A program made the translations under genes and the position numbers. This document shows positions 1,704-51,800 of a stretch of DNA of 64,000 nucleotides, piece after piece (the stretch's first letter is position 1; the number at the start of each line of letters is the position of its first letter). The DNA comes from Podarcis muralis (taxonomy: Eukaryota), in the NCBI RefSeq assembly GCF_964188315.1, contig NC_135667.1, positions 9,300,001-9,364,000 of the forward strand, written 5' to 3'. The notes beneath the pieces are model-generated. The model saw only the letters and a list, made by a program, of their open reading frames with translations. It searched no databases and was not told where the DNA came from.

Positions 1704-1742
1704 GGTTTTTGCCAGCCTTCAGATTCACTTCCTCTCACTGTG
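1704..1742 (-). promoter_or_regulatory. V(D)J recombination signal sequence of IGHV1, 23-bp spacer
   Basis: Minus strand: heptamer CACAGTG (1742-1736), 23-bp spacer (1735-1713), nonamer GCAAAAACC (1712-1704), directly after the YYCWRE codons. Confidence 0.95.
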
Positions 1743-2196
1743 CCTTCTCTCCAACAGTAATACATAGCTGTGTCTTCTGGTTTCAGATTGCTCATTTGCA
1801 GAAACAGCCTGTTGGAAGGGTTATCCCTGGAGATGGTGAAGCGCCCTTTCACTGAGTCAGGGTAATATTGTGAGCTTCCTGCACCACTGTTTATCCTTGC
1901 AACCCATTCCAGTCCCTTCCCAGGAGCCTGCCGCACCCAGTTCATCCAGTAGCTGCTGAAGGTAAAACCAGAGGCTTGACAGGAGAGGCGGAAGGACTCT
2001 CCAGGTCTTTTTATGTCCCCTCCAGATTCCTCTAGTCGAACCTCTGATTGGATACCTGTAAAGAAAGAGATATCATAAAGCTCTCTAGACATTAATGAGT
2101 AGACTTCAAATGTTTTCTTGCATGGGGAAGGGGGGGGGGGAAATAACGACCTCTGAAAACTGCCAAAACACAAACTAATTGAAGCAAAAGGATCAT
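1743..2196 (-). CDS. IGHV: Immunoglobulin heavy-chain variable segment IGHV1 (clan III-like), apparently functional
   Basis: Leader exon 2196-2151 (46 nt, [18 protein letters not shown] donor); 95-bp intron; V exon 2055-1743 ([13 protein letters not shown]...[30 protein letters not shown]...RFTISRDN...EDTAMYYC) with both Cys and the conserved Trp; followed by an RSS. Confidence 0.95.
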
Positions 2197-2295
2197 TCTT
2201 TTAGTTGCTTTGGAAAAGGTTGTCTGGAAAGTGATCCCAATCACAAGGGGGTTGCAACTGTGGATGGAGTTGGGGCTGGAAAATGTTTCGACTGC

Positions 2296-2330
2296 TTTAA
2301 ACAGGAAGCTGTCCCTCCCTGTATTTGCAT
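2296..2330 (-). promoter_or_regulatory. IGHV1 promoter: octamer ATGCAAAT plus TATA-like TTTAAA
   Basis: ATTTGCAT on plus at 2323-2330 (ATGCAAAT on the sense strand), about 127 bp upstream of the leader ATG, as in VH promoters. Confidence 0.85.
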
Positions 2331-48155: not shown

Positions 48156-48200
48156 GGGGTACATAAGCCTGGGGTACATAAGCCTGGTGTACATAAGCCT
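48156..48200. repeat. 15-bp tandem repeat, 3 copies
   Basis: GGGGTACATAAGCCT, GGGGTACATAAGCCT, GGTGTACATAAGCCT. Confidence 0.85.
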
Positions 48201-48892
48201 CTTGACCTGGCTCAACAAAACAGCTCACACCAGACTACAAGAACAATTTTAGTTAACATCAGGTGTCACTGCTCTTCTCGTTGATCCCATGTCAATACGT
48301 TCAAGGTTACAATGTTATTGCAAAATTGGAGTTGGACAGTGGATTTCGTTTTAGGATTTAGCACTTATTGGTTTCCATAGGTAAGATTATGGCTCTGTGT
48401 CAGGTCCTGATTTTCTTGCAGGGCTTTGATCTTCAGGGAAATCTGAAGTTTTCTCATCTACAAAAACAAGGAAACTTATTTGCACTTACTTCTGAATCTA
48501 AAGTCTGAAGGTGTAATTATCTCCCCCTGCAACTAGCCAATTCAAAATAATTGCTTCAGTCACCCAAATATCGAAAGGCTTTCACAAAGACACTAGAAAA
48601 CAGTCAATAAACAGCTTGGAAAAGTATTAAGGAAACAAAGTGCTCACTGACAGTTGGGAGTGGGGGACAGAAGGTAGCCTGTGATAATGATTACACATAG
48701 CACCACTTTTTCATATTGAACACCCAGCATAAAAAGAGAGAGAAGGATTAACTATGCTAAAAGCAAAGGTGATATGTTTCACCTTATGAAGTGAATTGTG
48801 AGAGTGAGGCAACATTTAACGTAGTCAAAGTCAGGCAGTTGGTGTGTATGAACACCAAAGAATCTGCCCCCAGGAGTAGATTTACTGCAACT

Positions 48893-51800
48893 ATGCAGAG
48901 GCTTTGGCTACTGCTTCTGCTACCCATTGTGTGCAAAGTCAATACAATGCAGTGTCCTGCAGGTGATCCAATCCCAGTTCCACATGAATGGTACCAGCCA
49001 GGTGACCTCCTGATTGGTGGGATTGCTTCTCATATATTTTACCATTCCTCAGTAATTGAATTTAAGGAAGATCCTTCTCAGGAGCTACTTGAGGTTCCAC
49101 AGTAAGTACTTATATTCCCCACTTTTTTCCTGAAAGATCAATTGTCTTTTACAAGGCTGCATGTTTGTGTGAAGCAGGAGTGGCTAGCAATACCCATCCA
49201 GCAGCAACATCACTGCCACATACCTGTTGCTGTTGTTGTTAATTAATTCTGTATACTACCCTTCATTCAAAGATTACAGGGGCGTTCACAACATAAAATA
49301 AATAAAGGAGAAGACAAAATATATTGATGATAGAATTGCATTAGAGGAAATTGCTTGCAAAAAATTTATAAAATTTACACTATGATGCTGGATTTCAAAA
49401 ATGAAAACCAATGAAAACAGCAAGAAATAAAAGACTACTCTAACAAAAATGAATGGGATTGAGGAAAGATGGTATCAAATGCTTAAGTGTGAATTAAAGT
49501 ATTAATGTGTCGACTCCATTGGCAGTATAGTGACAAAGTTCTATCAGCACATCCTGGCCTTGGTGTTTGCCATAAAGGAGATCAATGATGATCAAAAGAT
49601 CTTGCCAAATGCTACACTTGGGTTCCACATCCATGACAGCTACTATGATGCAAGGATGACCTATCGTACCACTTTGGACCTGCTCTTCAAATCACACAGA
49701 TTTGTCCCTAACTACAAATGTGACAGCCAGAAAAACCTCATAGCTATAATTGGAGGACTTACATCTGGCATATCTATCAATATGGCAGAAATCTTAACCC
49801 TCTACAAGGTTTCACAGGTAGGGTCTGTGTTTTGGAAAATGAGAGAGACTGCAAATTAAAAGAACCCCCTTTTTTTAAAGGCAGAGTTGGGTGAGCAATC
49901 CTGTGGCAAGATCTTCTGGGATGAGTGATTTATGATGCAGAGGAACTCTGGAATCAGAAAAGGCTCAGAGAGTGTTAAGTCTCCAATCCTGGTTCAGCTG
50001 AGGATATGCTACTATAATTTGCTCATCCCATCTCAGCTATGGTTTAGCCACTACTGGTGTAAGTCCTGCACTCAAAGGCCTTCCAGAGGCAGGGTGGGAC
50101 AGAAGCAGGGCATAAGCTGGATCCTAAACCTGTTCAGTTTGCTCACATGAACTGGCAACTCAACAGGTAACACTAATTAGTGTCTATATTCCTTCTGCCA
50201 GGCTTAGGTTAAGGAGAAGAAATATACAGTGGTACCTTGGTTTAAAACCATAATCCGTACCGGAGGTCTGTTTGTAAACTAAAACAGATTGTAATACTAA
50301 AACAGATTGGCGCTTTCGCCAATGAGGCCTCCCAAAAAAATTTGTTCATAATCCCCCCCCCCCAAGGGTTGTAATCTAAAAAAAATGTTGAAAACCGGGA
50401 CACGCACTTTCGGGTTTGACTTGTTTATAATCCAAAACAAATGCAAATCAAGACATATGCAAACCAAGGTACCACTGTACTGGAAAATGCATATTTTACT
50501 CAAAAAATGTTTTATTAATTGTCATTCTTTTGGAACCCACAAAGTTCTTAAATAAATATTTTGTTATAAAGACACATTCTCATAGCAAAATGGGCACACA
50601 TATAATTATATTGTATTATATTATTGCTGCAATACATATATGTTTTCTTTTAGCTCACCTACGGTTCATTTGCCGCAGAAGAGATTCAAGCATTGCGGAG
50701 CTTTTCCTTTTACAGCATGGTCCCAAATGAAAGCCATCAATATATTGGCATTATCCGTTTACTTCAGTATTTCGGATGGACATGGGTTGGGCTGTTTGTT
50801 GTGGATGATAACACGGGAGAATATTTCTTGAAGACCCTGGAGCCACTGTTTTCCAAGCATGGAATCTGTTCCGCCTTCACAAAAAGAATCCCAGAGCAGG
50901 TTTCCATGGAACATGTAGATGAAATACTGAATAAAATTGAAAGAATTTATGTATCTCTCACAGATAACAAGGCCAGAACACTTATCTGCTATGGAGAATC
51001 TTTGACAATTGCCTTCCTGAGAATTGTTAATCTTTTTCATGATCATGGACATAAGGAAAATGCTTCATTTGGAAAGGTATGGGTTATGACATCTCAGATA
51101 GATTTCACATCTACTGGCCCTCAGAGAAACTGGGATTTCCAGCTTTTTCAAGGTGCACTTTCCTTCACAATTCAGTCAAGAGAGCTTCTGGATTTTTCAG
51201 AATTTCTACAGAGCATCAAGCCTTCCAGGACCCAAGCAGATGGTTTTCTCAAGGGCTTCTGGGAGCAAGCATTTGACTGTTTATTTCCAGATCCAGAGAT
51301 GCCGATGATGGATGATGACACATGTACTGGAGAGGAGAGGCTAGATAGTCTCCCTGCAGGTATTTTTGAAATGCACATGACAGGCCATAGCTACAGTGTC
51401 TATAATGCTGCCTATGCTTTGGCTCATGCTCTGCATACCTTCTACTCATCCCAATCCAAGCACAGACCAAAGGTGGATGGTAGCAGTATTGAACTTCAGT
51501 CTCTGCAGCCTTAGCAGGTAATGTCTTCACAACAAAATAATCTCATTGCAATGGATAGTGACCTTATGCATACAAAGTACAGCAATGCTGTTTATCCTTC
51601 AGCTTATGCTTTGCATGCCATTTATACATCTAGATCCATACGAAGAACAATATTCTTGAGTAATGTTGATGACCTTCAGTCACTGCATCCATGGAAGTTA
51701 ATGTCTTTACATAAAAAAATCATTTCAATTCACAATTAAAATTATCATATGTAAGAATCAGCTGAAACAGGTGACAATTGTAATGAATCTTATACATTCA

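Follow-up and report, generated by a model that had tools for sequence, protein, structure and literature searches.

In the mammalian locus for immunoglobulin heavy chains (IGH), the ADAM6 gene is located between the proximal variable (VH) segments and the diversity (D) segments and is lost from rearranging B cells. The trypsinogen (PRSS) genes are found within the T-cell receptor (TCR) beta locus, between the V segments and the D, joining (J) and constant (C) elements, where they are conserved across species and deleted by V-to-DJ joining. Olfactory receptor (OR) genes flank the mammalian TRA/TRD locus, and human IGHV orphons are present on chromosomes 15 and 16. Here we report a stretch of 64,000 nucleotides from the lizard Podarcis muralis (assembly GCF_964188315.1, contig NC_135667.1, positions 9,300,001 to 9,364,000), called the window below and numbered from its first letter, in which two co-oriented minus-strand IGHV segments, IGHV1 and IGHV2, separated by about 42.7 kb, flank four intact vomeronasal type-2 receptor (V2R) genes, A to D. 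IGHV2 is recombined to a heavy-chain joining (JH) segment and expressed as productive heavy-chain mRNA. The window is probably an internal piece of a functional lizard heavy-chain V region in which ordinary V2R genes are embedded.

The locus resembles each of the described systems in one respect and departs from it in another. With ADAM6 it shares an unrelated, functional, non-lymphoid gene inside an IGH recombination interval, but ADAM6 stands for no more than one or two genes without introns, confined to a single site, whereas the lizard locus carries arrays of six-exon receptor genes, members of a large family, whose copy number differs between related species. The trypsinogens, too, form a tandem family unrelated to the antigen-receptor locus that surrounds it; they belong to another locus and another family, and they lack the choice of one receptor per cell that V2R genes and V segments both have. 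At TRA/TRD, chemosensory genes also adjoin antigen-receptor V segments, but they only flank them, whereas the V2R genes of the window are interleaved between V segments, of which IGHV2 is shown to be used. Human IGHV orphons, too, are V segments away from the dense V array and among unrelated genes; they are not rearranged into antibody transcripts, whereas IGHV2 is. Compared with ADAM6 and the trypsinogens, the present locus differs in its scale, in which family is the guest, and in the active turnover of that family within it. We found no description of IGHV/V2R interleaving in the literature on squamate IGH and vomeronasal receptors or on Lacerta agilis immunoglobulins, nor was one met when the principal papers on squamate V2R genes, the Komodo dragon genome preprint and a gecko IgM preprint were checked for the relevant terms. 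The Komodo genome paper shows no more than unnamed 'non-V2R genes' within a V2R cluster. Deletions of ADAM6 and PRSS1 have been mentioned in lymphoid leukaemias, that of ADAM6 in B-lineage leukaemia (PMC12085065).

The survey of the window started from a listing of its open reading frames (ORFs) and their translations. Two V-domain frames were found on the minus strand, together with four pairs of large ORFs typical of V2R exons 3 and 6; the plus strand carried two more V2R-like sets, and two reverse-transcriptase (RT) ORFs of long interspersed nuclear elements (LINEs) were also present. Pfam recognized V-set in both V exons (E 1e-12 and 3e-12), ANF_receptor, NCD3G and 7tm_3 across V2R exons 3, 5 and 6, and RVT_1 in the LINE ORFs. 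Self-comparison showed that the repeat unit of the array is a V2R gene with about 0.5 kb of upstream DNA, and that the V segments stand outside this unit. An earlier note on this DNA had described two complete, co-oriented IGHV segments about 43 kb apart with four intact V2R genes between them and two more V2R genes beyond IGHV2. The arrangement was borne out by the minus-strand position of both V segments and by the gene models of V2R A-D, all of which are open; its statements on completeness and on the two further genes held in part, as described below. Scans for the RSS (recombination signal sequence) and for WGxG, together with tblastn at E 10, revealed no D, J or C element and no extra V segment in the window; beyond IGHV1 and IGHV2, the RSS scan and tblastn gave no further credible RSS or RSS pair, J-like motif or V fragment.

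Both V segments retain the anatomy of a germline VH gene. In IGHV1, the promoter octamer ATGCAAAT (2323-2330) is followed by leader part 1 (46 nt, 2151-2196, with the ATG at 2196), a 95-nt GT-AG leader intron (2056-2150), a V exon of VH clan III-like type (1743-2055) and an RSS (1704-1742) consisting of the heptamer CACAGTG, a 23-bp spacer and the nonamer GCAAAAACC. In IGHV2, the same octamer ATGCAAAT lies at 45645-45652, the 5' untranslated region and leader part 1 at 45485-45583 (ATG at 45530; leader part 1 is 46 nt long, 45485-45530), the 85-nt leader intron at 45400-45484, the V exon at 45090-45399 and the RSS at 45062-45089, with the heptamer CACATTG, a 12-bp spacer and the nonamer TCAAAAACC. 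A TATA-like box is located upstream of the split leader in both, and both V exons carry the conserved Cys, Trp and YYC. Their best named relatives were 'Ig heavy chain V-III region' and 'Immunoglobulin heavy variable 3-33', which are clan III heavy-chain V segments, and within squamates the highest identities were 81% in tegu, 79% in the Komodo dragon and 77% in Gekko kuhli. Protein identity between the two segments is 70.6% and dS is 0.77, indicating that they are old paralogs. The completeness claimed for both therefore stands as far as octamer, split leader, V exon and RSS are concerned; a consensus heptamer with a 23-bp spacer is present in IGHV1 but not in IGHV2, whose RSS is off-canonical.

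The origin of this unusual signal can be followed in Lacerta agilis. The ortholog of IGHV2 at locus L012 (RSS at L012 1351-1389) has the structure CACATTG-23-GCAAAAACC, relative to which the RSS of IGHV2 has lost exactly 11 bp of spacer; IGHV1 also has a 23-bp spacer. Since the L. agilis ortholog carries CACATTG as well, the odd heptamer is older than the 11-bp deletion, and since it keeps the 23-bp spacer, the deletion arose in the lineage of the window after its split from Lacerta. Directly behind the IGHV2 nonamer, 23 nt (CCTCCTTAGCAGATGGTAGCTCT, 45039-45061) are identical in L. agilis (L012 1390-1411). This block is conserved though the RSS spacer differs, and IGHV1 has diverged there. It loosely resembles the CTCF core, agreeing at 11 of 14 positions with what we take to be the consensus.

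The use of IGHV2 was seen in assembled contigs from RNA runs of the same organism. Contigs from three runs spanned 45091-45399 and 45485-45578 or 45485-45583, with the 85-nt intron spliced out; the joint in the RNA is 45399/45485, and the skipped intron begins and ends with CT..AC on the plus strand, that is, GT..AG on the strand of the gene. The intron, the promoter, the RSS and everything below 45090 had zero contig coverage. Agreement between contigs and genome ended precisely at the V coding end (45090/45091). Beyond it, the reverse complements of the overhangs translate, in the V frame, as CVRRAHYFDYWGQG, CVRRETREYYFDYW and CVRRAPGTYFDYWG. These are three distinct junctions from two runs, all in frame, each continuing with TAC TTC GAC TAC TGG GGA CAG GGG, which encodes YFDYWGQG. 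To our knowledge, a JH motif of the WGXG type is carried only by heavy-chain J segments. As IGHV2 is spliced and joined in frame to JH, it is a working VH segment and not an orphon, and the question of an active locus or orphons, which the earlier note had left to a search for rearranged transcripts, is answered for IGHV2 in favor of activity. Sampled words of the 1-kb stretch around each segment were present in the RNA runs at a share of 0.23-0.36 for IGHV1 and 0.22-0.31 for IGHV2, about what is expected if only the spliced leader and V exon are present. In the raw-read RNA run X16, zero reads fell on IGHV2, which is not informative without the tissue of that run.

In these junctions, the V end of IGHV2 and the J sequence are just about 3-11 nt apart. 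Under the 12/23 rule, a V segment with a 12-RSS is predicted to join J directly, and the short junctions together with the 12-bp spacer fit such direct V-to-J joining. IGHV2 may thus use D-less V-J joining; a heavily trimmed D is the alternative. Three main IGHV2 contigs, one from each of three runs, had one different substitution each, all located in the AGT AGC codons of complementarity-determining region 1 (CDR1; 45296-45300). AGT AGC codons correspond to RGYW, the hot-spot motif of activation-induced deaminase (AID). Somatic hypermutation is the likely source of these changes, and allelic variation the alternative.

It might be supposed that both V segments are orphons, that is to say relics which were brought into a V2R cluster and play no role in forming antibodies. 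V segments are indeed sparse, the 64 kb holding two of them, and the heptamer of IGHV2 departs from the consensus and its spacer has the 'wrong' length. For IGHV2 this explanation is contradicted by its splicing and by the three in-frame junctions with JH; in addition, octamer, leader, open frame and RSS are kept in both segments, and the ortholog of IGHV2 in L. agilis is 96% identical. We consider the orphon explanation hardly credible.

The V2R models were built from full-length references found by a representative search, with tblastn mapping of exons and splice borders anchored on conserved motifs. V2R A, B, C and D all lie on the minus strand, have six exons each and are intact: A (875 aa) at 4725-12825, B (875 aa) at 15660-22356, C (876 aa) at 24585-30217 and D (875 aa) at 33466-39919. 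The exons of A are located at 12825-12611, 11462-11171, 10872-10009, 6864-6637, 5855-5729 and 5626-4725. In all four genes, the exon lengths are 215 or 218, 292, 864, 228, 127 and 902 nt, the borders are GT-AG and internal stops are absent. The four genes are 86-90% identical to each other, with dN/dS of 0.28-0.39 overall and 0.11-0.24 in the seven-transmembrane (7TM) exon, indicating purifying selection since duplication. The 120 best matches were almost all annotated as 'vomeronasal type-2 receptor 26-like', with one '116-like' and a few generic or unnamed entries; among them, the closest relatives were annotated V2R genes and not calcium-sensing (CaSR), taste or GPRC6A receptors. The best matches, 92-93% identical, came from Podarcis muralis, L. 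agilis and Zootoca vivipara. V2R A-D are presumably used only in vomeronasal neurons. Among 150 V2R cluster representatives, no gene model fused V-set and V2R domains.

The two V2R genes expected beyond IGHV2 are present on the plus strand, but neither is a complete open gene within the window. V2R E (48893-53705), which stands head to head with the A-D array, has six exons and is open except for one premature stop: at 51512-51514, TAG replaces the TGG of its paralogs at codon 454, the second-last codon of exon 3. This makes V2R E a pseudogene of very recent date or else a null allele that is segregating. V2R F (about 57413 to 63104) is open in exons 1-5, and its last exon, which encodes the 7TM region, lies outside the window. 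Of the two LINE sequences, one is an RT ORF of 778 aa at 7449-9785, within intron 3 of V2R A, and the other is a 2.25-kb insertion on the plus strand at 40778-43029, between V2R D and IGHV2, whose RT ORF (40881-42920) encodes 679 aa.

The L. agilis locus L012 (CM020429.1, 7.94-7.97 Mb) was reached via the 7TM protein of the L. agilis ortholog. Its IGHV segment matches IGHV2 with 96% identity in protein and 92% in nucleotides over 1.08 kb including the flanks, and is located 3.7 kb upstream of a V2R gene on the same strand, next to which a second V2R gene follows. In the trees of exon 3 and exon 6, V2R A grouped with the second of these V2R genes, and V2R D with the first one and with the first V2R of the Zootoca locus L011, with support of 98-100 for the placements of D and A; for D, orthology is given by exon 3. 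The junctions IGHV2-V2R D-V2R A are collinear between L. agilis and the window at 85-93% nucleotide identity. Two independent assemblies thus have the order IGHV2-D-...-A in common. This speaks against a misjoin at the IGHV/V2R boundaries, one of the findings that the earlier note had named as refuting it. An assembly artefact by which IGH and V2R contigs were wrongly joined might be suspected, as both families are repetitive and difficult to assemble. The collinear L. agilis assembly, a window without any N and a comparable adjacency in Gekko kuhli all speak against it, and we regard its probability as close to negligible.

The comparison also showed turnover of the array. V2R A follows directly after D in L. 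agilis, whereas the window has the order D-C-B-A. The LINE at 40778-43029 is missing from the orthologous interval of L. agilis, which indicates that it was inserted after the split from this species. Exon 6 of V2R B, C and D (15660-16561, 24585-25486 and 33466-34367) forms a clade found only in the window, in which C and D are 99% identical; exon 3 of the same genes is about 90% identical, and exon 3 of D groups with orthologs of other lacertids. This pattern indicates that the 7TM exon has probably been homogenised by gene conversion or partial duplication. No V segment was found within reach of the V2R loci sampled in Zootoca (L003 and L011) and Eublepharis (L004).

In Gekko kuhli, V segments were found at the three loci sampled on the 62.4-Mb chromosome CM122952.1. 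At 59.39 Mb (L007), a complete six-exon V2R gene and an IGHV segment with a 23-RSS stand 1.4 kb apart; at 60.64 Mb (L001), only V segments are present; and at 61.09 Mb (L008), a run of IGHV segments adjoins an OR gene. Across 1.7 Mb or more of this chromosome, V segments and chemoreceptor genes intermingle. IGHV-V2R adjacency was found both in L. agilis, where it is collinear with the window, and in G. kuhli, where it is comparable. The V2R gene linked to IGH in the gecko falls outside the A-E clade. The likeness between gecko and lacertid is one of shared architecture and does not prove common descent of the particular V2R genes. The V-only loci seen with 10-kb flanks came from Naja naja (three loci), Crotalus adamanteus, Varanus komodoensis and G. 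kuhli (one locus), samples that are uninformative on interleaving elsewhere in those genomes. The IGHV segments sampled in Naja naja were sparse, with one or two per 20 kb on CM019155.1 (L009 and L010, 143.04-143.15 Mb); when L002 at 143.9 Mb is included, they extend across 0.86 Mb or more.

Unrelated genes are located within an antigen-receptor locus here: intact V2R A-D stand between IGHV1 and IGHV2, and IGHV2 is used. In the explanation that we prefer, an internal piece of a functional heavy-chain V region, the VH segments have kept what V(D)J joining requires, namely promoter octamer, split leader and RSS, and the V2R genes are ordinary six-exon receptor genes under purifying selection. 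Their co-location would reflect two multigene families evolving by birth and death in one duplication-prone, default-silent region, and not a shared function. V(D)J joining deletes or inverts the DNA between the joined segments, and both V segments of the window point toward lower coordinates. If D-J-C were located at lower coordinates on the same strand, B cells using IGHV2 or more distal V segments would excise IGHV1 together with V2R A-D, which would then sit on a signal circle with no consequence for the germline. If D-J-C were inverted, joining would invert the interval instead. Somatic loss of V2R A-D from B cells is a reasonable inference.

Another explanation accepts the V segments as functional and denies the deletion of V2R A-D: D-J-C would lie in the opposite orientation and joining would proceed by inversion, or the V segments would form a separate sub-cluster whose use leaves the V2R genes on the chromosome. 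It agrees with the absence of D-J-C from the window, where they were not located, and with the presence of V segments on both strands of one chromosome in G. kuhli; a preprint also reports that the IGH loci of geckos hold multiple IgM genes. On the other side, the two V segments of the window share one orientation, the L. agilis ortholog is oriented likewise relative to its V2R genes, and deletional joining is generally known as the common mode in IGH. We judge this explanation rather unlikely, with some chance of being right.

Several points weigh against an internal piece of a functional heavy-chain V region whose V2R genes are deleted in B cells. D-J-C were not located, none being present in the window, and the arrangement in cis, the orientation and the choice of deletion over inversion rest on inference. 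For IGHV1, the evidence of rearrangement consists only of its k-mer share in the RNA runs. The IGHV2 evidence comes from assembled contigs, and the IGHV2-like transcripts may stem from a near-identical copy elsewhere in the genome. Expression of the window V2R genes in the vomeronasal organ is a presumption. In G. kuhli, IGHV segments occur on both strands of the chromosome (L001, L007 and L008, 59.39-61.11 Mb), and gecko IGH may use inversional joining. The V loci of cobra, rattlesnake and Komodo dragon are V-only within 10 kb.

It could also be asked whether the two families are linked for a reason, either because insulators or loop anchors are shared between V choice and the choice of a single V2R gene, or because linkage itself is selected. 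The linkage is found in both a lacertid and a gecko, and the 23-nt stretch behind the IGHV2 nonamer is identical in L. agilis. However, the IGH-linked V2R gene of the gecko is outside the A-E clade, copy number varies among lacertids, other squamates commonly have V-only stretches, and the CTCF consensus is matched at only 11 of 14 positions. Such a coupling is very improbable, and a functional coupling of lymphoid and vomeronasal programmes is unsupported. A wider proposal would be that VH segments and V2R or OR genes of squamates form a megabase mosaic predating the gecko-lacertid split, in which elements behind the VH RSS, such as the conserved block after the nonamer, guide both scanning by the RAG recombinase in B cells and the choice of a single receptor in vomeronasal neurons, and in which the antibody and chemosensory repertoires constrain each other's evolution; we offer it as a long shot.

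For a V region with embedded V2R genes, the consequences reach into both systems. ADAM6 and the trypsinogens are single sites with small families, whereas here a large, fast-evolving sensory family is interleaved with antibody V segments, and a second lacertid and a gecko show this arrangement too. In B cells of lizards, RAG scanning and contraction of the locus would have to span tens of kilobases of foreign genes, and B-cell clones probably differ somatically in their V2R gene content. In the VH segment IGHV2, an 11-bp deletion that postdates the split from Lacerta turned a 23-RSS into a 12-RSS, and the segment is still used, with very short junctions. An isolated V segment in a chemoreceptor cluster should not be written off as an orphon in annotation. 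As a natural system, the locus lends itself to studying how two 'one receptor per cell' families stay apart in their regulation.

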